A stretch of DNA of 64,000 nucleotides from Sphaerodactylus townsendi (taxonomy: Eukaryota), in the NCBI RefSeq assembly GCF_021028975.2, contig NC_059433.1, forward strand, positions 87,296,001-87,360,000, read 5' to 3'. Numbering within the stretch: position 1 is the first letter of the stretch; each line of letters starts with the position of its first letter. The position numbers and the translations under genes are program-made. This document shows, piece by piece, positions 9,712 through 63,886 of this stretch. The notes beneath the pieces were generated by a model. The model worked only from the letters and a program-made list of their open reading frames with translations, ran no database searches and had not been told where the DNA came from.

Positions 9712-9859
9712 CAGGGGTCTGCAACCTGTGGGTCTCCAGATGTTCATAGACTACAAATCCCATCAGCACCTGCCAGCATGTCCAATTGGCCATGCTGGCA
9801 GGGGCTGATGGGAATTGTAGTCCATGAACATCTGGAGAGCCACAGGTTGCAGACGCCTG
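9712..9859. mobile_element. Palindromic hAT MITE in POP1 3'UTR
   Basis: CAGG..TGCAACCT TIRs; 8-bp TSD ATCTAGGT/GTCTAGGT. Confidence 0.88.
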
Positions 9860-13500: not shown

Positions 13501-16500
13501 TTCAACTACTCTCCCTCCCTTTCCGTTATGAAGCAGAGGTTTTAAACTAGTGCAAAAAGAAACATTCTTAGTTGAAGACTTTCAGCCTAGTACAAGAGAC
13601 TCAAAGAGGCTTACAAACTCCTTTCCCTTCCCCCGTCACAACAAACACCCTGTGAGGAAGGTGGGGCTGAGAGAGCTACGAAGAGCTGTGACTAGCCCAA
13701 GGTCACCCAGCTGGCATGTGTTGGAGTGTACAGGCTAAACTGAATTCCCCAGATAAGCCTCCACAGCTCAGGCGGCAGAGCGGAGAAAAGGGTAAACATT
13801 CAGATAAGGCCATGTTCCTAAAGACAGAGCTTTCAGGAGATCTAAGGGGAAAATCAGGAATTTCACAAGAATACATTACACCACTGTTCACTATAATATT
13901 CCTAGAGACACATGGTTATATTAGAAGATATTCTCCATTCACAATGTGCAACTTTTGCTCTCTGTTTTTGTATTATTAGTTCCAAACACAGCAATTTATT
14001 CCCTTACAGGGTACCTGTAGAATTTCTGCATCACAATACACACTCCAGCACCTACCATCATGCAAGCACAGGCCATGTCATGCAGAAGACCTTTGACTAG
14101 AATTTATGTTTTTGCAAGATAAATGAACTTCCATGTTAAAACATTAGGCTTTTCTTTATATCCTTATAGAACCCAGTCAACTCAGAATTATCAGAGAGGC
14201 AGCTTTAGACACAGGGTAGGAGAAGCTTCAGAGGCCAACATGCTTATAAAACACATCGAATTTTTATGATTTTTAAAAGAATTAATAGATATTTAAAAAG
14301 AATGTTTTGAGTAATTTACACAAAACAACTAAGATCATTTGGAGTAAGGAAGCTGGGATAAATGTATCCAAGTCAAGCCTAACTGAACTGTTCCCTGTCC
14401 TAGCAGGTGATAAAATACAGTCATTCACTTAAGCTCAACTTCATTGTTGCACCTGCCATGACCCCACAGAGATATCTTCACAGCTTTTGCCTCCAACTTG
14501 CCATTATTTCATTTATTTATCATATCTACTCAGTATCTGGTTACTCTAGTTTATATAGCTTAGATCTTGCAATCCCACCCAGATCTCAGTCAATCAGTGA
14601 GGGCAGACCTACATTTCAGTTCTCAAAACCACCTTTGAGTTGCATTTCTCCAGCCCAGCAAGACATTCGGTCTTGATGTCTCTTTCCTTTGTGTGGAACT
14701 GAGCAGAACTGTTTCCTTCCCCCCCTAAAACCAACCTTATTAAGTGTAACAAGAACCAAATGAGGAAATTGGTGGAAATTGTTCCATTCCTTCACAGGAC
14801 TAATCTAGTCATGGTAACCGGTATTGTAAGCAAATAAAAAAATCAAACACACATCAAAGCAATTAATGTCAATTTCCCCCTGTATTTCAAACTGAAGATC
14901 ACTTACAAGAGGAAGCCAGAAAGCCATGCCCCAACCTTTGGGCAGCAAAATATCCCAGCCACTTCCCCAACCTGGTCGATCTTCTCCAGCTATTTTTCCA
15001 GGCTGCTGAATCAGAAGTATAGGAATCTTGGATTCTTGTGGGCCCAAGTCAAGATATGATCCGGGTACCAAGAGTTTACTTCTCAAACTATTTAGGTTCT
15101 GAGATGATAAAAGCAGACAAGACACTCTAAAATCAAGAACGTTTTTTTCAAAGGAGGTAAAACTCAAAACAATACCACTTAGATTTACATGCAAGTTTAT
15201 TTTTCCCTCAAGGTAAACTGGAATCTGAGAACCATAGGAGTTCTTTGTAAAAAGTGAGGGCAAGCCCCTCCCACATCCATCTGAACAACATGAAAACAAA
15301 GTCCTCTCAGTTTTCTAGGAAAAAAGGAGCAGGGCCTTTGCCTCACACGAATGGGACAGAACCAGCTCACAGTTACCTGCAATAAACTAGCTTCCTAACT
15401 GCCACACAGCAATAGCCTTAAAGCACGTTGATTCTGTGACCAGCCTCAGCCTCCATGGCACCATCTTGCGATGGCGTCTACTCAAAATTCACAGGCTCAA
15501 CAACGCTGTAGATTTACATACATTAATATTTACCTTCTTCATAGCTATTGATGATGTTAAGAAGTTACCTGTTCTGGCATTTTATTTTCTGTGACACTGT
15601 TACAAACGTTCCGGTCCCAGAGAAAACTCTGCGCGCACTCTGCAGAGACACCTCCTAAGGTCAACTGTCTAATTTTCTCACCATCTAAGAAAACAAAGAA
15701 CCAAACAATAAACAAAGGGAGAAAGCACAACAGCAAACTACGGAAAGGTTATGAAACACTCTTAATCTTGTCCGTTTCCAGATTGTAGCCTGAAAGCGCC
15801 TATTGGTAGACTTCTCTTAGAAGAGTAGCAGACACTGTTCTTGATGCGAACGGTCTTAGGATTTTCAATAAAGGGTCATTCAATTTAGGAAGCAGTCAAC
15901 TGCTAAGAAGAACCTTTGAAACAGGGATTAAACACACTTTTATTGTGTAACACCCAACAATATCACAAATGGAAGTTGCCAGGTATTGAGAAGCAGAGAG
16001 GTCTCTCACAAGGCAAAGTGGCAAGGACGGCAGAACTGCCCTTGATTGAAAAGGCAAGGAAGGACCAAGGCACACAGCCAAAGCAGGTGCACTTTACCCA
16101 ACCTTCAGTTCCTGGCGCCAGTTAACAGGATCTCAAGCCACAGAGCAAGGAAAGGTATTCTGCAAAAGAAACTGGAGAATTGTTTCTGGTCAGAAGAGGG
16201 ATAGCTGGCCTTGATGGGACAATTCTCCAATTTGGTTACATTCTCAAGGAAGCAGCAGAGATCTAGACCTTAAATGGGAGAAAAGCCAAAGGGTTTTCAG
16301 ATAGATAAAGTTCTGCAAATTGGTTTTTTTTTTGCCCTTTACTAAAGAGAGGCATTTGCATGCAGAAAAAAAATGGTTAGAAATGAAATCATGACCTTGT
16401 GAACTTATCAGATTGGCAAACAAGGTTGATGTCACTGAATAATGAAATTCCTGGCTCTTAAAATAATTACAGAAAAGGTACCTGAAGCTGAATAAGAATA

Positions 16501-19500
16501 ATAGGCACATTTCACAGGCATGGAACTTTGAGCATTTCCCTAGTTCACCATGGAATTTATGTTCTCTAGTAGGCAGACATAAGCACACCTAAGCACACCT
16601 TTACAGGACTTAACAGAAGCTGAATGTTTATCTCAGGTTACAGCACCTGTTGGCCTCGCCAGGATTCGAACCTGGATCATCTGTATAGCTTAACAGAGGC
16701 TTCCACTGAGCACAAGACCATTTCGGTGCCATACCTTTCTCACAGCTGCTAACTGCCATATAATCCTCATTCATCATGCATGCCTCGACCTAGCAACTTT
16801 ATTACCTGGAACATTTCACAGTCATTAAGAGGACAGTGACAATTCAAGTTATTTTTGGTATTTTAATGCATGAACACTCTTTAATATGGTGGGTTAGTTA
16901 TGTTTCAGAGGACACTTTACCTTGATATTTTTCTGGATTTGGCATGGCTTTTGACCTCTTTTTCGGCAAATTCACTCGCGGATCCCCAACAGTCAAACCC
17001 AATACAGTACCTGACGGAATGTCTGAGGAACTTAACCCTTAAAAACACACACAAGAAAGGGATGCACCCTTAAACAGTTTCACCAATAAATATCAGTACA
17101 CAGAAACATGCTAGACTGCTGCTGCACAGTTCACATTTGGTTTACAAATGGGCAAGCAGCATCCACGCAAGAATGTATTCAATTACACCGTAACCAGGAA
17201 CCTCAATTAACTGTCTTTGGTTATGTGTTTAAAAGAGAAAATGTAAACCCTGAAGGGAGATATAGGAACGTTTCCCAGTCTGGTATTCAACCGACTCTAT
17301 CCCCTTCAGACTTTCGGTATTTCAGGACAAAGGGATGCTCCTAACCACATTCTGAAATAGAACAGACCTCCACTCCTTCCCACTGAAGATGCCCACTTTG
17401 CTTCCTGTCCTTTTCTTGGGATTCACTGCCCCACCCCGCACGGCAATGATTACACCAGACAGGATCCAACCCCATGTACAGTTTGCCAAAAGCAAAACTT
17501 AACACCCTGCCTTTAGATTTCCCCAGCTGAAAATCAAAGTCCTATGGATCTCCAAATGGCAATGAATTACACAACTTCTTTAAAAGATACCTATCTTTGT
17601 GAAAGCATTTTATATTCTCATTCTTTTTATGAGTGGCTATCTGTACCCCTTGAAAACTGCAAAAGTAACATTTTGTTTGAATGCTACTTTATTACACCTG
17701 GATAAACATTCCCTAAGAAGCCACATTCGAAGCCAAATAAATGCTGATTACCCTTTGATGAACTGCGGAATTAAGAATCCATGAGTGAAATCCTCACTAG
17801 ATAGAAGGGGAAGGAGCATGAGCAATATTTACCTTGCAAAAGATCAAAGATGGCTTCTTGACGATGATGAAGAGCCACCTGATCAGGATTTCTGCAATTT
17901 TCTGCCCACCAACTGTTAATTTCAGAATCTGTAGTATCCAGGTCCTAGGAAGACAGCGAATCCATATGAGACAGGGAGAAAAATAAAAGTTGGCTCCTGT
18001 AAAGCATTTCTGCCCATACAAAGTCTTTCACTGGAGGTAGAGGCTTCATACTGTTGTCTAGCTACCCTTCAATGCCTGTATCATGTAGTATTTCACCAGA
18101 ACTAGGGAAGTGGTTCTCAACCTTTCTAATGCCGTGACTCTTTAATACAGTTCCTCATGTTGCGGTGACCCCCAACCCTAACATTTAACCATTTTACAGA
18201 TGGAGAACACTGATGCAGACAGTCTTAGACAACCCCTGTGAAAGGGCCGTTCGACCCCCAAAGGGGTTGCGACCCATAGGTTGAGAACCACTGGACTAGG
18301 GCCTTCCAATCCTTAACATTGCCTAGAAAGCACTCACAAGTAGCTGGTGAGAAGACAGTATTGGGCCTCTCTCTCTTCCATTGACTTTGCACATGATCCA
18401 ACCCTTAGCCTGCTGAATAGCTTGTTGTGTCACATTTGTAATTCTCGCATAGGGCATCAGGATCTACACTAGAGCTGGTTAGAGCATAACTTTAAAAAAA
18501 ATCAATATCAAACTAACAAGTACTGGACAAGGTTTTTCATAAGTATCTCAATCCAAACACGAGCTGACACACTAGGTCGGATCCAGAGATGCATCAGTGG
18601 AAAGTTCTCATAGATTTTCCTTCCCACCCCAAGAAGCTGGGAAAGGGAAGGGGATAAAGTCGCACTTCCTGCCTCTTTGATCAACAAAGCTCTTTTTGTG
18701 GAACAAGAAGGCAGTGATGTTGCTCGCCCCACATCTCCCTCCTCACTGCAGTCCACCAAACCACAGGGCCATGAGTCCTCACAGGTCGCAGGGCCTTGCA
18801 AATAAAGTTCCCCAGAAGTGTAAAGAACTGCAAAGAGTAAGGGATTCAAAATCCCTGTACTGGATACAACACCAATATCCATGCAGCTGCTACACTTAGA
18901 ACATGCTTCTAGTGTGCTGGACGAGAGAGCTAGACTATCGGTCTGCCAGATCATATACAGGAGTGCCAAAGACTCTGGGCTCCAAGCACCATTTGTGGAA
19001 CTTCTGCTACCCAGTGGCCACACAAGGTATACACACAATATTCCCACAAAATCCCGATTTCATTTATTTCTAGAACTGGATTGTACTTTAATCCTTTTAA
19101 GACTCCATTCTTAAGCAAACCTTTACAATGTGAAAGCCCAGCAGATTTTATTAGCCATTCAGAGCACAAAATGCTCCATGGACATTTCTGAAAGGTTCTG
19201 CACTCTTGTATAAACACAAGTAACTAGTTTTACTGTTTCACATGGCTCTGGCATCTATCAGCATAACTATTCTAGCATTTGGGGCTGTGAACAAACATGC
19301 CAGCAATGGATTTTCTTACAGTATGGATGGCAGCAGCTTTGAGTGCCTCTGTAAGGACACAGGTTGAGAGAGGACCAACCAGTCTATATCGGAGGATCTC
19401 CATGGTCAAGTCACTGGAAGAAATAAGAGTTATACAGCAAAAAATGAATCCTGTAGTCATCAGACAGTTCAAGGACAGCGCAAAAGACCTTACAGTGCTT

Positions 19501-22500
19501 AAGTATGTAAATGCTACTACTTTTAAGAAATACCTGATCACTATCCCAGTAGTTTGAGATATCCAGCAATATGGCTGACAGGGGTCTCTGGTTCCATCAC
19601 CAATAATTTTTTTCACAGGGACAACCATTTCTTCATCTTTCCTCTTTCTTTTTTTGCCAGTTTCTTCAGCTACATCAGTTTTGTTTTCTTCTTGGGGCAA
19701 CGTCAGAGCAGGTTTGGGGTTACACAGTTCCAAGGGCTCAGTACAACGGCAGAGTGTTTTCAGCTCAGCCAGAATGTCCTAAGTGAGAGAGATTGAGAGG
19801 AAAGTTCAAATTTGATGAGGTCATCTTCTCAATAGATTAAGGGACATGGTACTACTTGTGGAAAGACTGAAGACTGCAGGAAAAGAGGAAAAGAGGAAGA
19901 CCCAACATGGATTGGACTGTATAAAGGAAGTCACAGCCCTCCAGTTTGCAAGGCCTGCGGAAGGCTTTTAACGCGAGGACATCTTGCAGGACATTGATTC
20001 ATAGGGTTGACATGAGTTGAAAGAACCTGACAGCACTTAGCACAACACACATTACTTGTGGAGTGGGCCTACAGATTGACTTTGAAGGTATGTACGCTTA
20101 ATATCTTGCAGCCTCCTGACCGCATGGCTATTAGACAGAGGCGTAGCTGGGTCAAACTGCACCCGGTGTGCATTCTAATTTTCCGCCCCCATGGCCACCC
20201 CCTCATGGTGCCCCCCCTTCCCACACTTACCTTAGTTCCTTTCCTTTTTCAGAACTTTTTCAGGCTGTAAAAGGCCTGTTCTCAGTAAAAACGGCCTGAT
20301 GGGAACTATACTTCCCAGGAGACCTTGTGAACCCCAAGGTCTCCTGGGAACTGTAGTCCCTCAGGCCGTTTTTACTGCAAACAGGCCTTTTGCAGCCTGA
20401 AAAAGTTCTGAAAAAGAAACTAAGGTGAGTGTGGGAAGCGGGGTGGGGGGGTGCCGCAGGGGGGAAAGGGGGAGGGGCCTGGGGGTGATTTTCCGCACCC
20501 CCCAGGCGTGCGCCTGGTTCACAGCGCACCCCCCACCCCCTTGAAGCTTCGCGACTGCTACTAGATCACACGGGTCCCATGATCCTGGTAATAAGCTTTC
20601 TGTAGGGCCAGAATAGATTGCTGGGAAGAGGGAAATGTGGGAAAAAGATGTGACCATCAGCACCTTCCACTGATGGAATCCAAATTCCACACAATTTCAG
20701 CAGTACAATCCAAGATGAAAAATGTCAGCTCATGTTCATCCTCTTTGGATACTTTCCCCCACCCCCTCAAGATAACACCTGTGCACTGGACTGCCCATGA
20801 CATCTGTCCCTGGGAGGTACTCCAGACAGAGGCTTGCTTCTCATGTCATCACACATTATATAATGTGCATGGCAGAAGAGGAAGATGTGTGAACACACAT
20901 ACAAACCCTGTTCTTCTACCACAGGAAGCAAAGTGACTGCCAGGGAAATTTGGGAACTGGCCCCAAGTTTCTGCTGCAGAAGGAAAGGCTGCTGACATTT
21001 GCCAGAAGGTGACTGCACTTTTCAGTACTTCCTGCAACATAAGCATTTCACAGGTTTTAAGGGAAAACAAAGCAGCAAGGCTTATACCTCCTTAAAGGTC
21101 GGATGTGTCCATATCCACAACTGACGGACAGCAGAATCACTGTTGGATGCATTTCTGGCCTTCCAAAGAAATGTAACCGGACCAAGAGTGCCTTCAGGGT
21201 ACTGATCTTTTCGGTACAAAGTGAGAGCGCCCTGGCGCCTCCCAGCTAAGCAAGGAATAGCTGCAAATGTTGGCCCTGAGGAGGAACATGTTAAAAAAAG
21301 GCAGATGCTGTTTACCTTCCAAGGTCACCCTACAAGCTCCCATCAAGGTAGGGGATGGGCTCAGAGCCTCCTGACCCAGCATTTTTCAAAATATTACCTG
21401 TATCTACATTGCACATTCGAGCAAGGGCTGTTAGGAGTGCTTCCTCTTTTCCTACCAACTCCAGGCAACAGTAGTATGATAAATCCTGACAGAAAGAAAA
21501 GCTATTAAAATTAAATCTGGCATGAGCAGTAAGATAAGGCTAGATTTTTTAAAATAGAGTCAGTTTTCCAGCAGTAGTTAGAGTTCAAGGTGAAGGAAAA
21601 GAGATTCCACCTAAACATCAGGTAAAACTTCCTGAGAGTAAGGGCTGTTCGACAGTGGAATGCACTACCTCAGAGCGTGGTGAAGTCTCCTCCTTTGGAG
21701 ATTTCGAAAAGAGGCTGGATGGCCATCTGTCAGGAGTGCTTTGATTGTGTGTTCCTGCATTGCAGGGGGTTGGACTTGATGGCCTTCGTGGTCTCTTCCA
21801 ACTCTATGATTCTCATAACTAAACCTTACACTTTAGAGAAATGAGCCACATGTTCAACCCAGTGAACTGAAATAGATGGCGACTGAACACATCAAGCAAC
21901 ATTCTACTGAGTGAGACCCTTGCGCCTCCCTTGAGGTCAATACTGTCCAATGTGACTCACAGTAGTTCTCAAGAATCTCAGGCGGAGTCGTTCACATCCA
22001 ATATTTTTAGCTAGACTAAACCTGGAAGTTTTAGGATGCAAATCAGATGCTACAGCACCTAGAAACTGCTCCTTGCCTCCTTCAGCAGTGGCTGGAATAT
22101 GTCTTTTCAAATAAAAAAGGATCTGCTGTTAACAAAAGGCATAAGATGGAGTCAGGCCAAGCTGCCTAGCTAGAGAGTTCTGATAATCCTGCACCACAAT
22201 CACAAAGATGCTGTTATTGTGCCCTTGCAGATCTGTGTCAAAATCCAGGATGTGTTGTAGTTTCATCAACTTTACCTTTACGATATAAGGAAGTCTGTGG
22301 TAGGGAAAAGGAAAAGGTGCTTTTGGTGAAGGTTAAAAAAACCCAGCACTGTGAATTCATCCTGTAAGCTAAACAGAAGTGCTAATCAATCCTAGGTTGA
22401 AACCCTGTACTATTGTAAGAACTGCATTTAGCTACAAACATACAAGGCCAAAAAGTCTTCATTATTAATGGTTAGCAACCAGAGCCAACAGACATGGGGG

Positions 22501-25500
22501 GGAAAGAACAGGACCGCGTCTCACCGTATTGTCCTGCTAGGTCCTGCCACACGTCGGAGGGAAATCTGTTGGAGGTTCCTGACCCACGGGATATCCAGCT
22601 GGCCACTAGAAGGGCCAGGGCTTTTATGACCCTGGCCCCTAACTGGTGGAATAAGCTCTCGAGTGAGATCAGGGCCCTGTGGGACCTAAACTCTTTCCGT
22701 AGGGCTTGTAAGATGGAGCTTTTCCACCAGGCATTTCCATCTGGCCAGCTGGCCTAACCTGACTGTTATTCTCTTTGGCCTTCCATGGGCACAGCAGGGA
22801 GGGAGGGAAGTCCCCATCTGAGCTCATTCTATTGGTTCTATGTATCTGAACTGTTTTTATGACTGTTTTATTGTTTGCTGCCCTGAGCCCTGTTGAAGAG
22901 AGCAGGATATAAATAGAGAAATAAAATAAATAAATAAAATATAAAACTGGTCAGAGGCAGCCAAGTCAGTCAGCTTCATCTTTCTTCCTCCTGGGATGGG
23001 ATCTCAACTGCTCTACTAAAGAGGGCAACGAGTGATTTTAAGACCAACCAGTCACACATCCCCTCCTGCCCAGGTACAACATTCATAAACTTTCAGGGCA
23101 CCTGAAGCAGGCAGTGGTTCGCCATGGCTCGGTAGCAGGCCCGATAGCACTTGGTTGTGGGCCTGTCTCCTAAGCAGTAACCCCATTTCTTCACCATGTG
23201 AAATCGTTTCGCATGCCAGATGTGTGTTTCCAGCCAGATGTTTTTCTTCTGTCTGCGATTGAACTCGGCCACCAAGTTTATATGACGTCGCCTGGCTTTA
23301 CGACACTTGCTTTTTGGGAGTTCTTTTTTCTGATGTTCAGGTTTCTCTACCTGTATAGTTGGGGACATGGAGTAACTTTGTATTGCTGTCACAGGGACAG
23401 GACACCAGAATTATGTACAGCACAACCCCCACGTCAACTACCAAGTTTCTCGGCCTCCTCTGAAAGTGCCAGACTCCACAACTGAAAATAATTCTCTACT
23501 TTGTTTTGCAAAGGTACGTTTCACTGAACCTAATCCTCCTAGTACCCCAAATAACCTCAGCCGACTACCAAATTCTGATCTATCCTCCAATCAGTTGTCA
23601 GCAAACTGTCAATTAGCCACTTCACAAAAATATTTCTACCATTCTGCTTGATGAAACAACCCCTCCCCCAGCAGGTTTACAAGAAAGAAGGTCAAAGATA
23701 TAAATTTTCTACCGAAGGAGCCCCCAAAATTCACCTGTCAATAGATTGGCTGACATGAAAGAATACAGAACAGAAGCAAGCTGCTAAGTGGGCAGAGACT
23801 GCATGCATGTGGGAAGAAAAAGTTGAACTGTGCTTCTTAGCCGGAGAGCCAGCATGGTATAGCAGTTAAGAGCAGGTGGACTCTAATCTGGAGAACCAGG
23901 TTTGTTTCCTCATCCCTCCACATGAGCGGCGGAGGCTTGTCTGGTGAACCAAATTTGTTTCCCCACTCCTACATTCCTGTTGGGCTGGTCACAGTTCTCT
24001 CAGAACTCTCTCAGACCCACCTACCTCACAAGGTGTCTGTTGTGGGGAAAAGAAGGGAGAGAAAAGCTAAGCATAAATCCAAACTCTTCTTCTCTTTTAG
24101 GTGCCAGAAGCCAGTGCAGTTCACAAAGCACATGGAATAAGGGAAAGAGGACACAAGGGCCAAAGCAGAGTATCTGGAGGAGTAATCACACATCCCCATC
24201 CTCCAGAACAAGGGAAGCAAAAGCCTGCCACTTGACCAGATGGTCAACAGCAATGTCAGTTTCAGTCCTGCACATGAAACGGCAAGCAAAGTACACAGAA
24301 ATATCTCCCATAACCAGAGGAGTGGGGAGGGGGAGGGAATGGCACCGGGGCAACACCTGCTCCAGGCCCCCCCCCCCCGCTCCTACTTACCTGCTCCAGC
24401 GGTGGCCCAGCCAGGCTGCTCCTTTGACCAGCAGAGGCCCCACTGGCTGTAGGAGCAGCTGGGCAGGGCCAAGGGGAGGGGTGTGGGGGGCGATTCTCCA
24501 CCCCCCCCCACGTGACCTGCTGGCGTGCGCCTGGGGGCATGTGACCCCCAATTTCCCCGTGAGTGCTCCGCCTCTGCCCATAACCCACAAGACAGAAAAA
24601 CACCTCTGCTTTGGCAAGTTCACGGAGCCGCCTGGGCAGGCGCTTGATATTGTGGCTCATTGCCCGCCTTCTCATGTGCCTCGGCAGAGACTGAAACACT
24701 AAAGTGTTGGAAGACTTCTGCGCAGCTGCCTTCAGCATGGCCTTCATTTCAGCAGCACGAGCTCGAACAAAAGGAGAGACTGAAATTGAGAGGAAGAACT
24801 CCTTCAGAACGTGCAAGACGACAGATTATTCATTCAATTCATATGATATCCACTTACCTCACTGAGATTCAGGATGTATTGAAATATTAGAAAACAGGGC
24901 AACGGAGACCAGTGAAATACCAATAAAGAATGCAATATTTTAAAAAGCTGCCTAAAACTTTTCCTTGACTACAATTCCACCTGATGGGATTCTCCTCTGA
25001 AGAAATCAGTTCATAAAGCAGTGCGGCCAAGGCAATCGCAGCTAACTTCAAATCTCTTAATTAGGTAGAAGTGACTTACACTTTTTCCAGTTTTAAACAG
25101 TTCTATTTTTGTTACCTGCCTTGGGTCCCAGTTGCCTGGCAGATATCGCAACACAAACTGCAATGCTCAGCCAAAATTATTATCCTCCACTGGAAAAATA
25201 AAGCCTATCAAACACTTGAAGGAGCTTAATGTATGAATATAAAAAGCCGTGACAACTCTTAATAAGTTTTGGCTTCTTTCAAATTCTTTTTTTACCCTTC
25301 CTTCCCAGGAAAGTATAGGCTTGTAAATAACCACCTGCATGATTGCCTACACCCTACAGCCGTGGTGGCGAACCTTTGGCACTCCAGATGTTATGGACTA
25401 CAATTCCCATCAGCCCCTGCCAGCATGGCCAATTGGCCATGCTGGAAGGGGCTGATGGGAATTGTAGTCCATAACATCTGGAGTGCCAAAAGTTCGCCAC

Positions 25501-28500
25501 CACTGCCCTACAGCAAGAAAAGAACTGCTACCAGGAAACCAGACAAGGAAGCAGCAGCCCTCCAGATGTTCATGGACTACAATTCTCATCATCCCCTCCC
25601 AACATGAGCATTTTCTATACTGGCAAGGGCTGAAGGGAATTGTAGTTCATGAACATCTGGAGGGCCATGAGTTTGACACCTGTGCCTAAGTATAGGAACT
25701 TGTTCTTTGTTTTAACAGGCCTGACATCATTCTCACAGTTTGCTCAGGCAGAGCACTACAAGCTGTCTGCATCCTAGCACATTAGGTGGGCTTATATTAT
25801 TAAAACCAGCCTAACGGTTATTTACATATGTAAATACATTTTCCCCCTGCCCTTTCCCAAGAAGCACGGGGCTCACTCTGCCTACACAGGTCTCTCCATT
25901 TCGCAGCAACCCAGTGAAGTCAGGCTCAGATAGAATGAGTGGCTCAAAGTCACCCAGTGAGTTTCATGGTAAGGGGAATTTGAACCTGGGTCTCCCTGAG
26001 TTTCGATCAAGTAGCAGTCTAACTGCTAATGGGTACACTAACTCATTTCAGTAGTCATGATTTTCAGCCATATCCAAGCAGCGAGGCAGGCAGCAGCGGC
26101 ATAATGACCATGCTGCCCCTCCCAGAGAGACTTCCCGGTGGCTTGGGGAGGCTGTAAAACATCCCTGGCACAAATCAGCAAATGGCCAGCTCCTCTCCTG
26201 ACCACACAGCTGATCCGCCCCCACTACACCAGCAGCAGAGGTGCAGGGTCACTGCTGCAGCATCCTAAGCCAAGTCCCACTGCCAGGGGAGGCTGATGGC
26301 AGCTGCACAGTAGCGGTTTCACCTCTCTGCCAGAGTAAGTGCCCCGGGTTGAATCTGCTGGCGCTAACCGCCTGCATACCCCATCCATCAGGCAATTTGC
26401 GCCCCCCCCCTCCCCCCGCTTTGGATGGGCTCTGTCAGAAAAGTAACTATGGTAATTCTAGGGGATCTCTAACAAAGAAAAACAATACAACAGATTCCAT
26501 CTTTGCTTTCTACCAACTGGGAAGGGGAATTTTCATCGATTCTCCTCCCTCTCCTCCAAAAATCTTCCCACATATTACCCCACGCTGCTCCTGGGATCCC
26601 CCAAACATGGGGAGAGAGTTGTGAGCTTCAGCAGAAGAGGGAAGGCTGAACAGCTGATTTCTGCACACTGAGGTTTGGATCCAACTTCACATATAAACAG
26701 CAGACAACATCAAATTCCGCTGATAGGCTAAATGTTTCTGTAACAATTAACTATATCCTCTTTAAATCCCTCAGCATGAAGACAAGTTTGTATTTTTAAC
26801 TTGCTACAGCTCTCAAGATTTACAGAGACATAACACATCAGCAGTCTTTCAAAACTGCATTACCACAAACATCTTAGTCTATTAGCCCCTGTAACCTCGT
26901 TTACAGTTTAACATTTAAATACATGGATCTCAAAGCAAGGATGAATATGCCTTCATGGATATTTACCTGTTAAATATTTAGGCATTCCATGGGAAACGCT
27001 TTGATGAGCAAACCCTCGTGAGGTTTCAGGACGCAATTCTATAAAGTCAATGAAATTTTTTTAGAGATGGAAGTAAAACAATGTTCTGATGTATCAGACT
27101 ACCAGTACGTGCACACCATAATACATAAGCAACCCAAATGACGTCAGATGGAAATTACTTAGAACCATTTAACTAGGCATATAAGAAGTTCAAGCCCAAC
27201 TGAATCTTACCTATAGCAATCTGGATTTTATAGGTGCATTTTATTGTAGGCTTGATGTTTTTATGGCACAGTGTGATTTTATTGTATTTTATTATACTGT
27301 GTTGGATTTTATTGTTACTGCTTTTATTACTAATGTTATATTATTATATTGTATTCTGTAAACTGATTCAATTATGACTATAGAAAGGCAGGGTATAAAC
27401 ATTTTAAATAAATAATAAAATAGCACTTCCCATTCCATATCTCTGTGATCACTTTTGCAATAGTGGAGATACCCTATAGGGTAAGGAACCTGCGGCTCTC
27501 CAGGGATCGGTTTCAGATAAAACTAGGAACAATTCCCATCAGCCTCTGTCAGCATGGCCAATTGGCCATGCTGGTAGGGGCTGATGGGAATTGTAGTTCC
27601 TGAACATCTGGAGAGCCGCAGGTTCCCTACCCCTGCCCTAGGGATTAACACCCCTATCCAAAGGGGGGGGGGGATCCGCTGATGGGAGTGGCATGTGGTT
27701 GTGCCAGTGGATTCCTCCTCCCTGAAGCACTTTCCCTGGCAGAGGAGCGATTTTGCTGGTGTGCAGCTGCTGTGGCTCTCCCTGGCACTGGGATCCTGCA
27801 CTGGATGTTGCGCCAGTGTCCCGGGGTCCCTGCCGCTGGTGTAGCAGGGACGTGCTGTGGGAGGAGCCAACAGTAGTCGGCTCCCTCCCAGCCTTAGCCG
27901 GCAGCCTGGGCCGTGGATTTATGCCGCCAAAAAGGCAGCATAGGTCTATTCAGCCTATTGGGGGCTTCTTGGTGTTTGGGAAGCTTTTTTAAGAACATAA
28001 GAACATAAGAACAAGCCAGCTGGATCAGACCAAAGTCCATCTAGTCCAGCTCTCTGCTACTCGCAGTGGCCCACCAGGTGCCTTTGGGAGCTCACATGTA
28101 GGATGCTGTTCAAGGTTTCCCGGGCCACTGGGAAGCCTCCATGGGAATGGCAGGGTTGTGCCACAGAGTTTGGATGGCCCATGTGGTGTTATTGCTTAAA
28201 AAAATTAAAACATGAAAAGGTCTGTGGGATTCTCTTCAGAAGCAGAAAAACGGCCCCAATAACATGTCCTGAAAATACCTCATTCTGTCCCTCTCCACAT
28301 TTTAAAAACATCTAGCCTTTTGTCAAACACTGTATGAAAGCTTACAGACTGAGTGAGTCATTTTGGTTACTCTTAATATACTATACAGATTTAGTGCTCA
28401 GACTTTTCTATTAAGTGCCTAATATTTTATTGGCGCCAAAGCTTTTACAATTTTATGTTAAGAATTGGGTTTTAATTGCCACAGGGCTGAATTTTATTGT

Positions 28501-30289: not shown

Positions 30290-30730
30290 GTTTTTGTCTC
30301 TGCCCTCGAGCCTACCCGCAGCAGCTTGGCCGCCCCGTCACTTCCGCCAACAAACCTCGGTTGGCCACCAGCTCCGCTCCTTCCCTAAGCAAAAGTCTTC
30401 CCAACCAACCACGTTGGGTATACTTCCGCCAAGAGCCGCCGCACATGCGCACTCCCAACACCTGCAAGGGCTCCGCTCTTCCTCCCTGAGAACTACATAT
30501 CCCATAACCCTCCGCGAGAAGGGGCGGTTACGAGGAGGAGCAAAAAGTGGAGGCGGATTTTTTGTTTGAATGGCTCTGGGACGGACCGGGGCGTGATCAG
30601 GAGGGGCGGGGCCGGAGTTATGCCGGGGTTGCTGCTGCGAGTCTTTCTGCGCACGGGGTGCAAAGTTCAGAAAAACACAAAAGCGGCTCAGGCTTCGTTG
30701 GACCCCCGAAGAAAAGCTGCTGCAGCTGGC
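30290..30730. promoter_or_regulatory. Bidirectional CpG-island promoter of POP1/RIDA, including probable POP1 non-coding exon 1 (donor at about 30315)
   Basis: CpG-rich; ETS cores (ACTTCCG at about 30340 and 30422), NRF1-like GCACATGCGC, ZNF143/THAP11-type ACTACATATCCCATAACCC (30492-30510), CGCG-like CCGCGAGA, GC boxes; head-to-head genes. Confidence 0.85.
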
Positions 30731-30795
30731 ATGGCCACGCTAGTCAAGAAGATCATCCATACCTCCAAAGCTCCGGCGGCTTTGGGCCCCTATAG
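30731..30795 (+). CDS. RIDA: RIDA exon 1 (coding part)
   Basis: MATLVKKIIHTSKAPAALGPY; GT donor at 30796. Confidence 0.95.
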
Positions 30796-33700
30796 GTATT
30801 GTTACTTACTTCAGTTGGAGCTCACTTTTTTCGCTTATGAGGGCTCCAAGGGCTTATAAACCCATATGTTCTATCCTCACAACAACCCTGTAGGGTAGGT
30901 TGGTGTGACTGTCGCAAGGTCGTCCAGCAGACTTTCATGGCAGAGAGAGGATTCGAATCGAGCCCTTAAGGAACCTAGTCACTTTGACCACTACGCCTTA
31001 TCAGGGTTGCCAGACTGAGGGAAGGAGGAAAGAGTGTGGAGAGAGGATACAGGACCAAGTGACTTCCCCACCTCGACAAGTCCATCGGGGTACCCTACGA
31101 CGCAAGTGGGCTTGGCCCAGTGGCCAGCACCACACAGCTGGGCCACAATTTTTCTGGAGGGGGGAGCTTAAGACAGAGGGGAAGATCCCCAACACAGCAG
31201 GCACCTTAGAAAAAACAGGTGGCTGAGGTGATGCAGTGTGGTTTTGCCTAGGGTTAGGCTAGTCCAACAACATCCATTCATGGGCCAGAGATCTAGCCAC
31301 AGTGACCCATGCCCTAGTTAAGTGATGGTGAACCTTTTTGAGACTGAGTGCCAGGGGTGGAGCAAGGGGAAACTGCACCTGGGGCCCCTGCCATGCCCCC
31401 ACCCTGCCTTGGAATGCCCTTGGAATGTCCAGAAACACCCCTGCCCCGCTCCCGGAACACCCTCGCCACACCCCCGCAGGGGCGCACGCCCAGTACATCA
31501 CGCACCCCTCATCCCCTTGGTGCTATGCCACTGCCGAGTGCCCAAACTGGGGCGACAGCTTGCATGCCACAAAGAGGGCTCCGAGTGCCACCTCTGGCAC
31601 CCGTGCCATAGGTTCGCCACCACTGCCCTAGTTGCATCTAGACTGGACTACTGCAACACACTCTACTTGGGGCTAATTGTGAAGAGTGTTCAAGGACTGC
31701 ACAGAGAGAGCACAATATCTCAGTTTAAAATGACTATTCCTTGTGCTCCTGAAAAGTGAATTCAATCCTACATGATCATCAGCTGAAGAGATAATTATTG
31801 GATGGCAATTTGTTTTAATTGCTCTAATTTTCAATATTGTGCTGTAGAGAGCAGCATGGTTGCCCTAGGCAGGCCTTATGTCACTGAGGTTTGCTTGAAA
31901 GTCTACACAATTTTAACTAAATGAATTGTCGTCTGATGCTCAGAATTAATTGGTAGCACAAAAATCTGTCAAGCTGGCTTATGCTGGAATACAGGAGACT
32001 CTACAGAAATACCACAAGAAAATGTGTAACTTAATTTTCCAGAGTAACCATTTCAATTAGACTGCTGGATTGTCTAGCTTGAACTTGTTTGTTTTTTATG
32101 AGATTGACACAACATAAGAATTGCCATGATAGATCAAAGGTCTACCTAGCACTCTGACACCTATAGCCTTTAATTCCATAACCATCACATTTTATCACAT
32201 AAAATCCATGTTGTATTGGATCCCCAGATGTCCTCAGTTTCAGAATTTCCACTGCTCTGGCTGCCAAAGCTATCAGTCTTGGTGATAATGTGGTTGTAGG
32301 AATGTTGATACTGTCGGTATTGCTAGAAGGGCAGTAAGTAGATCAGCAGTGTACTAAATAAAATGTTTGCGGTGTACTCCCAAGCAGAGTTGCCTCTAAG
32401 TCCACTGACTTCAACAGAATTAGAAGGGTGTAGTTTTGACCTTGGAAGACCCATGCAGGCACCTGTCTAGAGGTAGTGTTGGTTTGTACCAAGGGAAGGC
32501 AAATATTGCAAAGGTTGCATAGAATTCTTTGACCTATCATTATTGGATATTAAAAGATGAGGAAGTTTAGCTTAGTCCTATTAATGATTACTACATGCCA
32601 GGCAACTTAAATGCCAGGCAACTGCTATGCAACTAATTGATGTTGCAACTTTAGTGTTATATACATATGCTAAAATGGGTGGATTCCAGTTAACACATGC
32701 AAATTACACTTGCAAAATTGCACCCTTAACACTTTTAACCAATGCAAATGGTTCTTTCTACCACCCTGAACATTCCACAGGTATATATACTCCACTTGCT
32801 TTACTACCATCAGATCCTCTGAAGATGCCAGTCACAGATGCAGGCGAAACATCAGTAGAGAATGCTGCTGGAACACAGTCAAACAACCAGGAAACCCCTA
32901 ACCCTAATGATTACTACAGCCTGCTGTTTTTAAAATTAGCAATTAAATATATTACAGTATGTTTCTTAAGTGGTTTGGAGAAAGTGCTGAAATTGGTAAT
33001 CTTAACCTGATTAACTGTATCTTGTAATCTGTCTTGACACTGCAAGTTTGAAGCCTTTTGGTTAGGGACAAATTACACATTACATATTATTATCTTTCCC
33101 TGCCTTAAAAAAGATCACTGCCTTTAATAGAGTGCTAATGGGGAGGGGCTGCTTAACCCCTCCCCTACATTTTCCCTTTATTAGTATTAGTAAATCACTG
33201 TATTTCTCAAAGGCTAGAAATGTTGCATACTCATGGATTGGGGGTTGACATTTTTTATGAAATCCAACCATTTCAAAAGGAAAGTGCTAGAAGTGAGATA
33301 AGCACTGCCCAACCGTGAATCTCTGCCTCTCTCTTTTGATACTTTACTATTGCACATTAGTCAAGCAGTGCTGGTAGACCGGACCGTGTATATTGCGGGA
33401 CAGATTGGCATGGATCCTTCAAATGGGCAACTTGTACCTGGAGGAGTAAAGGAACAAGCTAAACAGGTAAAACATTATTTCAGTGATTCCAGTGATCAGT
33501 CTGGGGCCATAATCCATGCTGCACACTCAAAAGCCATATTTGTGACCCAAAATTTGTGACCTTTTAGGATGTGGAATTAGCAGGGCAGACTTTGGTTTGT
33601 GAGAGGGGGTAACCAAGAAATCTGCAGGGGTCCAAAAATAAAGTTTAAGTTTTTTATTGGAAAATAAAATAATGAGCGTATACACTCTCAGTTGGTAAAA

Positions 33701-41764: not shown

Positions 41765-44700
41765 CTGTAACATTAAAAAAATTCTATAAGGATTTTTATA
41801 GAACATATTTTAGGAACAGATCTTTGAAATGAAGATGAATTCCAAGAAATTGTTCCGTTTCAATATTTTTGCATTATTCTGCAGCACTACTGACACAAAA
41901 AGCTTACCCAAACAAACCTATTCATTGGAGGAACAAGATCACAATCAGAAAGTAAAAATCTTTCTTAATCAGACACTTAAGTGTATTTCAAAAACATTAA
42001 ACATTGACAGTGATTTCTAATATAATAACAGAGAAGGCACTTCTGAAGTACTTATTAAATAAAAAAAATACACAGATACGAACTAGTTTCTGAACAGGAT
42101 CAAGTGTTGTGAAAGTTTTGCTTTGCAATATAAAAAGGAAACTTTTCTCTTGCATTCTGTATAAGCATTCAAAAAGAACACCCACCCACAGTCCTAATAG
42201 TTAAAATAGAGGATTCCCAAAAGAATACTTTAGGTATGATAAAGTAAGCATCCTCCTGCTATTTGGGGTTTAATCCCAGATACTAGTTTCCCTTAAAGAT
42301 AATATGGTGCCTTCAGTTTCACAGAAAGAAAATATCTACCATCAAGTGTGATTGATGGAAATTAAAGAACAGTGCTTTAGCTGTAATTTTAGATCTTGCA
42401 TGAGTGATGAACCCTTTCGCTCTCCTTTCATCTGTACTTTTTGTCTTTCATCGGCCTGTACTTTGTTTTGTCCTCCGTACAGTCAAGAAAATGAGTTCTC
42501 AAACATCTACCCATCCCAGAGGCCTGACTGCCAAAGCAAGATGCCAACACAAGAAGTAGAATGGGGGGGGGGGGGGGGAATTGCAAATCCTCTGCAATAA
42601 CAAAATGTGTTTGGCAAACAGTAACTATGGGATTAAACATATTTAATTAAGCTTCTTATTTTCCAAGGTTACGTCTTTAACATATTTTCTCCAAGCTTAT
42701 CTACTATGGCAAATGTAAGACCAAACCAGGTGCAAGAGCAGCACCGCAGATCAGTGTTTAAGCCTGGATCATCCCAATCATGCAGAAAGTTGAAGAGAGA
42801 ATGTCCTACTTTAAACAGCAAAAGAGGAGCACAGACCGGCTGAGCTCCCATACAAGGAGAAAGGGTGCAGCCAGTATCTGCATTGCTCCCCCACTCATAT
42901 TTTGCTGTGCAGGTCTAATCCACCCCCAGAATCTGAATGCAGTTGGGACATTCTGTCACTATTATACCTAGTTTGGCTTTTACCCAAAGGAATCCAAGCC
43001 AGTGTGGTTTAGTGGTTAAAAGTGCCAGACCACTATCTGGGAGACCCAGGTATGAATCCCACCCCTCATGCCACGGTAGCTTGCCATGTGACCAGTGGTG
43101 GGATTCAAATAATTTAACAACTGGTTATTTACAAGCACCATTTTAACAACCAGTTCTGCCGAAGTGGTGTAAACCTGCTGATTCCCACCACTGCATGTGA
43201 CTTTGTTCTAATCACACACTCAGAGCCTAAACTACTTCAGAAGGTTGTTGGAAGAATAAATGGAGAAGAGAATGATGTGAGCCACTTTAGGTTTCCATTG
43301 GGAGAAAGGCAGGGCACAAATGAATAAAGCAATTAGGGAGTTGCTAACACAAGGTTATAAATATCAACAGTTTTTTTTAGAGTTCCTAATATTTAGCCTT
43401 TCACTACTCCGTCAACATACCTATCTCTGTTGCTGCTGTAGCTTCTCCTGTTTCTTCTTCTTTTGTTTCAGAGCCCTCACTTACTATCTCAGAGTGCATC
43501 TCAGTTTCCACCTTTTCTACCATCTCACCTGGAACAGTAACCATAGAGATCGAGTTAGGGAACACTGAACAAGTATTGAGTGCTGCAGCACCTTACACAC
43601 AACTTGTGCTGTCCTGTAATATCAGCAAGGGCAAAAACTATAGGGACAGATTCAGCCCCTGCCGGTTGCTGAGTAGGCATTTGTTGTGTTCTTTAGCAAA
43701 TTATGTCTCTGCCTGTGGCTTAAATTTACAGCGATCTCCCTTATTCAGCTTAGTTTGAGCTTTTAGGAAAAGCACTTAATGTCACAAGTTAACAGAGTTC
43801 ATACCGCTAAAACCCATTATTTGAACTTTGACTCTGTGAATCAACAGAATCAGACAGGGACCTTGATGTAAACAGAGTTCTCTTTCATCCAAGCATCTGA
43901 TCAGTTTGGATGACCTTGAGGCCTTCAGTAAATAAGTACAACTGTGTTTCCTACCCTATGCGTTTTGCAGAGGTCTTGCTACCCACACCATATACAAGCG
44001 GAACTAGAGGATATTTTGAAGGAAGAAAGTTATCAAGGCTAACAATCAAATTAAACAGTTTAAATCACAGGTGTCAAACCCCCGGCCCTCCAGATGTTAT
44101 GGACTACAGTTCCCATCATCCCCTGCCAGCATGGTGCTGGCAGGGGGTGATGGGAACTGTAGTCCATAACATCTGGAGGGCCGGGGGTTTGACTCCTATG
44201 GTTTAAATGAACCTATGTTTGGAGTCAGTATATGTCTTTTCCCCAAATGCTGGGGTCAAACAACAAGGAGTAGTCATCATCTTCATAGCCTTTCACTTAG
44301 GATGTTGGACAAGCAGGACTTTTGATTTAAGGCAGCAGGACAGTTCTTATAAGCAAAGTTCTATTAAAGCGACACCAAGCATTTCCAACCTGAAGATAGT
44401 GTAGTTTAACTTTATTATACCCAAGAAATATGAGGATATATTGACTGAGCTGGCCTGGAACTGAGCAGGTTATTTTGTTGCTGTCAGAGTGGGTAAAAAT
44501 GTTCTATAAATAAGTCACAAGGTTCATTCTTCTACAAGTTCCCCACTATATAGTTATAATCATAACTACTATACACTCTACTTCAGAAAATGACTGAAAT
44601 GGGACTGTAGGGAAACTGAGCAATGAGCTCAATCATTCAAGAGAATTCATAGATTTAATTCATCCCTATACAATACTCATAACTCCATCATTTACAAATG

Positions 44701-59399: not shown

Positions 59400-63056
<3,657 letters not shown>

Positions 63057-63752: not shown

Positions 63753-63886
63753 CTGCGAATATTCTCGCTGTCCTGATCGTCCAGTGGTCATGGCAGGCTA
63801 GACATTCGCTATAGCAACACTATGCAGTGTGTCCCCAGTGCTAGTTTGTATTGTCTACCTCTGGTTTTTAACTGCTAGTGACATTC
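63753..63886 (+). ncRNA. SNORA72: H/ACA snoRNA SNORA72 (U72) in RPL30 intron 4
   Basis: Begins CTGCGAATATTCTCGCTG as in U72; H box ATAGCA between two hairpins; ACA box 3 nt from the end; RPL30 is the known host gene. Confidence 0.9.

Follow-up and report, generated by a model that had tools for sequence, protein, structure and literature searches.

A tRNA-like cloverleaf conserved in an intron of vertebrate POP1, a candidate substrate of RNase P

An intron of the lizard POP1 gene carries a 69-nt tRNA-like cloverleaf (16651-16719, minus strand, which is the sense of the POP1 pre-mRNA) that is almost certainly a conserved, orthologous and structured RNA element. POP1 is the large subunit shared by RNase P, which cuts tRNA, and RNase MRP. 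Both enzymes are essential, and how vertebrates adjust the amounts of the subunits that the two have in common is, to our knowledge, poorly understood; the POP1 pre-mRNA, with a tRNA mimic kept for more than 400 million years, offers a concrete candidate for such control.

Location and host gene of the element

The window (the whole 64-kb stretch of lizard DNA analysed here) contains POP1 on its minus strand, as identified by matches of the Pfam families POP1_N, POPLD and POP1_C to minus-strand exons and by an exon map made with tblastn. The tenth coding exon ends at 16921 and the following intron begins at 16920, which places the start of the element 201 nt into that intron, in close agreement with an earlier note on this DNA that had put it about 200 nt into an intron of POP1. 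The 5′ splice site of exon 10 reads GTAAAG, lacking a G at position +5, and is common to all five amniotes compared below. The element and its surroundings are as follows; R1 denotes a custom model of the element.

16921..17037, minus strand: POP1 coding exon 10, hamster residues about 492-531 (tblastn and sequence)
15692..16920, minus strand: host intron, about 1.23 kb, with an approximate 3′ end (tblastn places the next exon at 15691-15566)
16651..16719, minus strand: whole cloverleaf (Rfam tRNA, 34.7 bits; minimum-free-energy fold; R1, 88.8 bits; orthologues in nine other vertebrates)

The motif of the T arm occurs only once within the 64-kb window. The nearest run of at least four T downstream of the lizard element lies at +175 nt, which bears out the earlier remark that an oligo-T terminator is absent; across species the first such run falls anywhere from +17 to +465, so that its position is not conserved. 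Since no conserved oligo-T Pol III terminator was found downstream of the element among the ten species, the element is most simply regarded as transcribed within the Pol II pre-mRNA.

Structure of the cloverleaf

The Rfam tRNA model (RF00005) matches positions 16719-16651 over its full length with 34.7 bits, above the gathering score of 29 (E = 0.0016 for the window), and the minimum-free-energy fold of the lizard element is the cloverleaf. The folding energy is in itself unremarkable (z-score -1.0), and ARAGORN called no tRNA. The parts of the cloverleaf, with their state in the ten species, are listed below.

16713..16719, minus strand: 5′ strand of the acceptor stem, pairing with 16652-16658 (98.6% of cells paired, 10 species)
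16699..16711, minus strand: D arm, with three pairs and a C-A mismatch in tetrapods, four pairs in fishes, and a 5-nt loop with an invariant GG (alignment and pair counts)
16680..16697, minus strand: anticodon-like arm, with a 5-bp stem and an 8-nt loop at 16685-16692 (alignment and pair counts)
16659..16675, minus strand: T arm, with a 5-bp stem and a canonical 7-nt T loop (invariant in ten species; sole copy in the window)
16651..16658, minus strand: 3′ strand of the acceptor stem (16652-16658) and discriminator base (16651) (alignment and pair counts)

All seven pairs of the acceptor stem form in the lizard element, two of them as G-U, and the G at 16719, which opens the 5′ strand, would take the +1 position if RNase P cut here. 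The lizard D stem consists of three pairs and a C-A mismatch, and the D loop retains its GG. The description in the earlier note (seven acceptor pairs, T arm, D-loop GG, short D arm and 8-nt loop) thus holds in every detail when judged by the sequence, the Rfam match and the fold. At the DNA level, the region of the T loop is a perfect B-box consensus.

Measured against a canonical decoding tRNA, the element reaches the Rfam gathering score but departs from the expected loop and connector geometry: the connector between the acceptor stem and the D stem is a single base in all ten species, compared with the standard two, and the anticodon loop has 8 nt in ten of ten species, compared with 7 nt. 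Nor does the element form a Pol III unit of its own with a nearby terminator.

Orthologues in tetrapods and ray-finned fishes

Orthologues were compared in a set of ten vertebrates: lizard, hamster, echidna, alligator, turtle, eel, arowana, piranha, a Danio and tilapia. The set includes no amphibian, bird, snake or second lizard, and no human or primate locus was compared. Sauropsid POP1 proteins were sought with a profile in which hamster POP1 and the exons of the window formed separate rows; the matches of that search also included primate POP1 proteins.

Each of the ten POP1 loci gave exactly one match to R1, with scores of 75-96 bits and a next best match of at most 21 bits. All ten copies share the intron, which follows the exon ending at hamster residue 531, and the orientation of the host gene. 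Their distance from the 5′ splice site is 151-247 nt, while the remainder of the intron varies between 137 nt and 9.4 kb. Within the element, pairwise identity averages 84% (range 74-99%), compared with 32% in the 5′ flank and 25% in the 3′ flank, values that are at background level; lizard and hamster elements are identical at 61 of 69 bases. Beyond the lizard, the orthologues thus span two mammals (a rodent and a monotreme), two further reptiles (a crocodilian and a turtle) and five ray-finned fishes, so that the element is neither restricted to amniotes nor new. Judged by this distribution, it is shared between tetrapods and ray-finned fishes and is more than 400 million years old. The earlier note had looked to the orthologous intron for conservation, which is present there in nine other vertebrates, from mammals and reptiles to fishes. 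Its suggestion of an amniote-wide element was right with regard to orthology and too modest with regard to extent, as the five fishes also possess it.

Selection on the fold

Across the ten species, 96.7% of stem cells are paired, compared with 30-50% when the pairing partners are slid along the alignment. Both sides of the pair have changed at three positions (4:65, 5:64 and 27:36), and the observed covariation score was reached by no shuffle. RNAalifold recovered the cloverleaf independently in the amniotes and in the fishes. In the acceptor stem, two of the seven pairs show compensatory changes and three show one-sided, compatible changes; the anticodon stem is closed by U-A in all five tetrapods and by C-G in all five fishes. 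With three compensatory pairs and 96.7% pairing in ten vertebrates, the substitutions support the cloverleaf. Taken together, the location in the intron and in host sense, the orthologous position and the pairing-preserving substitutions are those of a POP1-intron RNA element, and the comparison presented here shows that selection acts on the RNA fold.

The conservation is unevenly distributed over the cloverleaf. In the ten species the T arm, the T loop and the GG of the D loop are invariant, and the acceptor stem is either invariant or changed in a compensatory manner. The rest of the D loop drifts, as does the 5′ half of the anticodon-like loop, the 3′ half of which is nearly constant. All five tetrapods have A as the discriminator base, four fishes have C, and the Danio has U. 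This pattern shows that selection keeps the minihelix formed by the acceptor stem and T arm, the elbow of the D and T loops, and the U(-1)/G(+1) step, and that the anticodon loop is left non-canonical at 8 nt. The proposal that the parts relevant to RNase P are kept and the decoding parts are not, which the earlier note had put forward as a structural argument, now has the ten-species comparison behind it.

Leader and trailer sequences

Four features lie immediately outside the cloverleaf.

16720, minus strand: U at -1, directly 5′ of the element (invariant in ten species)
16725..16729, minus strand: leader strand GCACC of a possible 5-bp leader-trailer helix (RNAalifold on five amniotes, an independent prediction)
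16643..16647, minus strand: trailer strand GGUGC of the possible leader-trailer helix (RNAalifold, amniotes)
16734..16743, minus strand: purine-rich block upstream of the leader (conserved among amniotes in the alignments)

The complementarity between leader and trailer is invariant in the five amniotes save for one G-U in the alligator; the putative helix shows no covariation in these five species and is absent in the fishes. The lizard has a GT after the purine block (16733-16732) that is missing in the other four amniotes, and the region upstream does not align. The complementarity is reminiscent of MALAT1/mascRNA, where a leader-trailer interaction promotes processing by RNase P (PMC8457004).

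Candidate function and alternatives

The explanation that we favour, with a confidence that stops a little short of even, is that the element is a substrate of RNase P through which POP1 expression is placed under feedback. The tRNA end-processing machinery would recognise the nascent intron, with RNase P cutting at the U(-1)/G(+1) step and RNase Z just after the discriminator base. Cleavage in competition with splicing of the host intron would lower the amount of productive POP1 mRNA under excess RNase P activity and, since POP1 is itself a subunit of RNase P and RNase MRP, would form a negative feedback loop. The invariant T arm, T loop, D-loop GG and U(-1), together with an 8-nt loop that varies in its 5′ half, suit RNase P and RNase Z as readers of the element and not a role in decoding, and it is this pattern of kept and drifting parts that makes feedback on POP1 plausible. 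The leader-trailer complement conserved in amniotes points the same way.

A number of points count against cleavage with feedback. RNase P might recognise the element less well on account of its one-base connector, short D arm and 8-nt anticodon loop, and pairing between leader and trailer can also hinder the enzyme; the lack of covariation in the leader-trailer helix and its absence in fishes also tell against the mechanism. A cut within an intron need not reduce the output of mRNA: the hosts of intronic miRNAs and snoRNAs are still spliced when these are cut out. By analogy, the intronic cloverleaves of mitochondrial type studied by Hoser et al. would also argue against cleavage, as these were reported to enhance splicing in spite of not being processed as tRNAs (PMC7722341).

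A more specific form of the RNase P explanation, possible but doubtful in our estimate, is a co-transcriptional kinetic switch. With the element about 150-250 nt behind a suboptimal 5′ splice site, free RNase P would cut the nascent intron before commitment to splicing, such that the output of POP1, and hence the assembly of RNase P and RNase MRP, would track spare tRNA-processing capacity, the leader-trailer helix of amniotes tuning the cut. Were this correct, it would show, for the first time in a vertebrate, a ribozyme RNP that controls one of its own protein subunits by cutting a substrate mimic in the pre-mRNA of that subunit. The outline of such a loop was reportedly published in 2011; what would be new is the positional and kinetic logic, and experimental proof.

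A serious rival, to which we nonetheless assign a rather low probability, is that the cloverleaf is an enhancer of splicing that acts uncut, a protein-bound intronic structure that tunes the nearby, suboptimal 5′ splice site; its ligands could be tRNA-binding or splicing-associated factors, possibly RNase P itself binding without cleavage. The GTAAAG splice site of amniotes, which lacks the usual G at +5, fits this proposal, as does the finding that intronic tRNA cloverleaves raise splicing efficiency while remaining unprocessed (Hoser et al. 2020; PMC7722341). In that work the effect required the cloverleaf, peaked within 50-200 nt of the 5′ splice site and grew when that site was weak; intronic cloverleaves of mitochondrial type were reported not to be processed as tRNAs in 293T cells (PMC7722341). 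However, those effects on splicing were obtained in reporter assays with mitochondrial-type tRNAs (nimtRNAs), and an uncut enhancer leaves unexplained both the choice of POP1 as host and the strict maintenance of U(-1), the acceptor stem, the canonical T loop and the elbow over more than 400 million years. The host and the distance also bear on a further and improbable reading, in which POP1 hosts the gene of a stable, small tRNA-like RNA that is freed by RNase P and RNase Z and acts in trans, perhaps after CCA-tailing and export by analogy with mascRNA, and in which residence in POP1 reflects co-expression rather than feedback. The features that favour RNase P and RNase Z in our preferred explanation would serve such a product equally; the 8-nt loop, to judge from its near-invariant 3′ half, may do more than serve as a handle for processing, and mascRNA provides a precedent (PMC8457004). 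Against this, the constant spacing between element and 5′ splice site, like the identity of the host gene, suggests a role in cis.

Action at the level of the DNA is still less probable, indeed markedly so: the element would be an extra-TFIIIC site or a Pol III tRNA-like gene in its own right, acting through the exact B-box consensus of its T-loop region, which is invariant in the ten species, for instance by influencing chromatin or interfering with transcription. The compensatory changes in the acceptor and anticodon stems point instead to selection on RNA pairing, the A-box-like region of the D loop is not conserved, there is no conserved oligo-T terminator, and the orientation is that of the host gene in ten of ten species. 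Finally, an origin as a decayed tRNA pseudogene, as the head of a tRNA-derived SINE or as a cloverleaf formed by chance might be entertained on the grounds that tRNA-derived SINE heads occur elsewhere in the window (that at 61705-61776 scores 27 bits on the Rfam tRNA model) and that the folding z-score is just -1.0. We regard it as so unlikely that it can be set aside, since the element is single-copy at the orthologous position in each of the ten POP1 loci, between flanks at background level. It is the orthologues, and not the thermodynamics, that refute SINE, pseudogene and chance alike. The earlier note had considered the element distinct from the SINE tRNA heads of the window, and on R1 those heads score 13-17 bits, against 89 bits for the element; the dispersed copies with SINE bodies that it had named as evidence to the contrary are not seen in the window, where the T-arm motif occurs once, and no SINE body accompanies the element.

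Comparison with known systems

A tRNA-like structure in an intron of POP1 has reportedly been predicted before, by the EvoFam screen of a vertebrate multi-genome alignment (Parker and co-workers, 2011), which is said to have proposed autoregulatory feedback. The lizard element is presumably the orthologue of that prediction, sharing its host gene, kind of element and hypothesis, and we infer its identity with the human EvoFam element from the hamster and echidna orthologues. On this account both the element and the idea of autoregulation are already known, and the lizard copy, though real, represents no new class of element. Measured here, and not attributed by us to the EvoFam paper, are the pair counts over ten species, the constant spacing from the 5′ splice site, the invariance of U(-1) and the leader-trailer complement of amniotes. 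A full-text search, the scope of which did not extend to the text of the EvoFam paper, found no paper discussing POP1 together with an intronic tRNA-like element.

The nearest structural parallels are mascRNA and menRNA, tRNA mimics within the Pol II transcripts MALAT1 and NEAT1 (RF01684), which likewise combine a degenerate anticodon arm with an intact acceptor stem and T arm. mascRNA is cut by RNase P, aided by the leader-trailer interaction (PMC8457004). They differ in being located at the 3′ end of lncRNAs, whereas the POP1 element lies in the intron of a protein-coding gene and has a full-length anticodon arm; by sequence it stands outside that family, since RF01684 has no match in the window at E up to 10 and the tilapia orthologue, at 24.4 bits, falls short of the gathering score of 42.5.

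The nimtRNAs resemble the POP1 element in being intronic cloverleaves, with an effect on splicing that depends on the fold and on nearness to the 5′ splice site (PMC7722341). They are, however, recent and weakly conserved insertions of mitochondrial DNA (PMC7722341), whereas the POP1 element resembles a nuclear-type tRNA (it passes the gathering score of the Rfam tRNA model and has a canonical T loop), is more than 400 million years old and resides in the gene of an RNase P subunit. The canonical, nuclear-type T loop and the great age would argue against an origin by insertion of mitochondrial DNA. Whether read as a signal for cleavage or for splicing, the POP1 element offers a clean natural case of how tRNA-shaped structures are read in Pol II transcripts.

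Autoregulation by a mimic of the substrate is known from the hairpins of DGCR8 mRNA, which are cut by Drosha, and from the tRNA-like operator of E. coli thrS. SNORD86 in the NOP56 pre-mRNA belongs to the same kind of autoregulation (PMC7722341). Those loops have been shown experimentally, whereas the POP1 loop is a proposal; the likeness lies in the logic, in which an enzyme or RNP recognises a copy of its own substrate in the transcript of its own subunit.

Position of the element in the POP1 gene

The cloverleaf sequence quoted in the earlier note is confirmed on the minus strand as an element of 69 bases (16719–16651). Pfam searches of minus-strand open reading frames in the window identify the POP1_N, POPLD and POP1_C domains, and tblastn with fish and hamster POP1 queries places the exons between about 28.8 and 9.9 kb. 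The exon encoding hamster residues 492–531 ends at 16921 (minus strand) and is followed by GTAAAG; as the next exon begins near 15691, the element starts 201 nt inside an intron of about 1.23 kb. The earlier designation of this intron as intron 11 agrees with the exon map, provided that one non-coding first exon exists. The 5′ splice site reads GTAAAG in all five amniotes compared (lizard, hamster, echidna, alligator and turtle) and GTAAAA in tilapia; the usual G at +5 is missing, so that a conserved suboptimal donor adjoins the element.

Features of the POP1 locus
About 30700–33560, plus strand: RIDA-like gene (Ribonuc_L-PSP; Pfam E = 7e-09 for the exon 33350–33559)
28759, minus strand: start codon of POP1
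16915–16920, minus strand: 5′ splice site of the host intron
16734–16743, minus strand: purine-rich block, about 15–25 nt upstream of the element
16651–16719, minus strand: tRNA-like element
16685–16688, minus strand: 3′ half of its anticodon loop
7694–8463: tandem array past the POP1 3′ end (16.7 copies of a 47-nt unit, 93% matches)

The RIDA-like gene lies head to head with POP1, an arrangement which must be old, since tilapia POP1 also has a RIDA-like neighbour so oriented. Spurious ORFs pile up on both strands of the tandem array.

Other RNA-like features

60497–60666, plus strand: U2 snRNA match (46.8 against a gathering score of 46)
63753–63886, plus strand: full-length SNORA72 H/ACA snoRNA (105 bits against a gathering score of 43)
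2318–2400, 9739–9832, 20292–20368, 25386–25479, 25565–25657, 27525–27601 and 44092–44174, both strands: palindromic hairpin repeats of about 85 nt
Hamster locus 23801–23870, plus strand, just downstream of POP1: AT-rich tRNA match (46.6 bits)

The SNORA72 copy presumably sits in an intron of a neighbouring gene. The U2 match has a perfect 5′ 37 nt and a diverged middle, and is therefore probably a pseudogene or a U2-derived repeat. On both strands the mir-5408 model hits the palindromic repeats below its gathering score (24–66 bits against 90); they form a family that looks like a MITE-type repeat rather than miRNA genes. The hamster match looks like a mitochondrial-type tRNA, possibly originating in a nuclear insertion of mitochondrial DNA.

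Fold of the lizard element

The Rfam tRNA model matches the element end to end (34.7 bits, gathering score 29, E = 0.0016 for the 64-kb window). The cloverleaf is the minimum-free-energy fold of the RNA folded in isolation, with a folding energy that is ordinary for its composition (z-score −1.0). ARAGORN called no tRNA at the element, which fits its departures from a decoding tRNA.

Departures of the element from a decoding tRNA
Connector: 1 base, against 2 in a decoding tRNA
D stem (lizard): 3 pairs and a C-A mismatch
Anticodon loop: 8 nt

Orthologues in tetrapods and fishes

Golden hamster POP1, reached by searching protein representatives with the final POP1 exon and then looking up the cluster, carries an almost identical sequence in the same intron, on the sense strand (Rfam tRNA match, 36.1 bits). 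When the lizard and hamster introns are aligned, identity falls to background soon past the 5′ splice site, and then reaches 61 of 69 bases across the element. The element is also found in the POP1 loci of echidna, Chinese alligator, an Emydura turtle, piranha, American eel, Nile tilapia, Asian arowana and a Danio, so that the comparison covers a lizard, two mammals, a crocodilian, a turtle and five ray-finned fishes. The sauropsid POP1 proteins were reached with a profile of hamster POP1 and the exons of the window, each exon forming a row of its own. Six copies of the element went into a covariance model, which gives exactly one strong match per locus (75–96 bits), the runner-up in 248 kb scoring 21 bits.

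The orthologous position is occupied in nine further species, and in all ten the preceding exon ends at hamster residue 531. Measured from the actual 5′ splice sites, the element starts 151–247 nt into the intron (201–247 nt in the five tetrapods and 151–193 nt in the five fishes, with less certainty about the splice site of the Danio), whereas the next exon follows at anything between 137 nt and 9.4 kb. Averaged over species pairs, identity reaches 84% in the element, against 32% and 25% in the two flanks of 90 nt. The element is therefore common to tetrapods and ray-finned fishes. The earlier suggestion that it may be amniote-wide rather than wholly new holds as regards novelty, but the limit to amniotes falls with the five fishes.

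These orthologues rule out a SINE, a pseudogene or a chance cloverleaf, a reading to which we assign a negligible probability. Within the window the T-arm motif occurs once, and the SINE-like tRNA heads, from which the earlier note had distinguished the element, are indeed distinct: on the family model the element scores 89 bits, the head at 61705–61776 (27 bits on Rfam) 17 bits and a third site 13 bits.

Selection on the RNA fold

With the cloverleaf imposed on the ten-species alignment, standard pairs occupy 96.7% of 210 stem cells, compared with 30–50% when the 3′ partners are slid by one to three columns. Three pairs have changed on both sides with pairing kept: acceptor 4:65, acceptor 5:64 and the anticodon-stem closing pair, which is U-A in tetrapods and C-G in fishes. 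A one-sided change through G-U is seen at three further acceptor pairs. None of 500 shuffles reached the observed covariation score, a control recognised as lenient when the sequences are related; the fold owes most of its support to plain conservation. RNAalifold recovers the cloverleaf unaided in amniotes and in fishes.

The whole T arm, including the canonical 7-nt loop, the D-loop GG, three of four D-stem pairs and the U directly 5′ of the element, U(−1), are invariant in all ten species. The D loop outside the GG and the 5′ half of the anticodon loop vary; that loop has 8 nt throughout. As the earlier note had held, the parts read by RNase P are kept and the decoding parts are not: the RNA fold is under selection, which preserves the acceptor/T-arm minihelix, the D/T elbow and the junction of U(−1) with the first base, G(+1), but no usable anticodon loop. 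From fish to mammals the 3′ half of that loop hardly changes, a constancy that none of the readings considered below explains.

Processing or splicing

The minihelix, elbow and U(−1)/G(+1) junction are the features recognised by RNase P and RNase Z, which together excise tRNA mimics from Pol II transcripts such as MALAT1. A link between the element and RNase P is plausible. In the mechanism we tentatively favour, at somewhat under even chances, the nascent POP1 intron would be cut at the element by RNase P, and probably RNase Z; the cut would compete with splicing of the intron, and POP1 output would drop when RNase P is in excess. The leader GCACC in amniotes is complementary to the trailer GGUGC, and RNAalifold pairs the two in a helix of 5 bp that lies outside the acceptor stem; in MALAT1 a leader–trailer interaction promotes the RNase P step (PMC8457004). 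The helix shows no covariation among amniotes and is absent in fishes, and so stands as a proposal only. The purine-rich block is likewise conserved in the five amniotes and not in fishes; in the lizard it is directly followed by GT, which is absent from the other four.

An uncleaved splicing element, which we consider rather unlikely, would account for the fixed spacing from a 5′ splice site whose +5 position, in amniotes, is not G, and has a precedent in intronic cloverleaves that enhance splicing in a fold-dependent manner, most strongly 50–200 nt from the 5′ splice site and more at weak sites, and are not processed as tRNAs (Hoser et al., PMC7722341); the choice of POP1 as host would be left unexplained. 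Release of a small RNA acting in trans, sharing the cleavage step with the RNase P mechanism, appears improbable. Least expected of these is a DNA-level B-box or Pol III function, against which stand covariation in the stems, an A-box region that is not conserved and the lack of a terminator: across the ten species there is no conserved downstream T run (the first lies at +17 to +465), in keeping with the earlier remark that an oligo-T terminator is lacking.

Relation to known systems

Among the papers covered by full-text searches, none discusses or tests the POP1-intron element. The abstract of Parker et al. 2011 (EvoFam, Genome Research) reportedly describes an intronic tRNA-like structure in POP1, a gene of tRNA maturation, and the authors are said to have proposed autoregulatory feedback. 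The lizard element would connect to the human one, and with it to that prediction, through its hamster and echidna orthologues, and on that basis is already known. This analysis itself yielded the pair counts in ten species, the constant spacing to the 5′ splice site, U(−1) as an invariant base and the leader–trailer complement confined to amniotes, none of which is attributed to Parker et al. The element is genuine, structured at the RNA level and deeply conserved; it is biologically attractive yet the orthologue of a published prediction.
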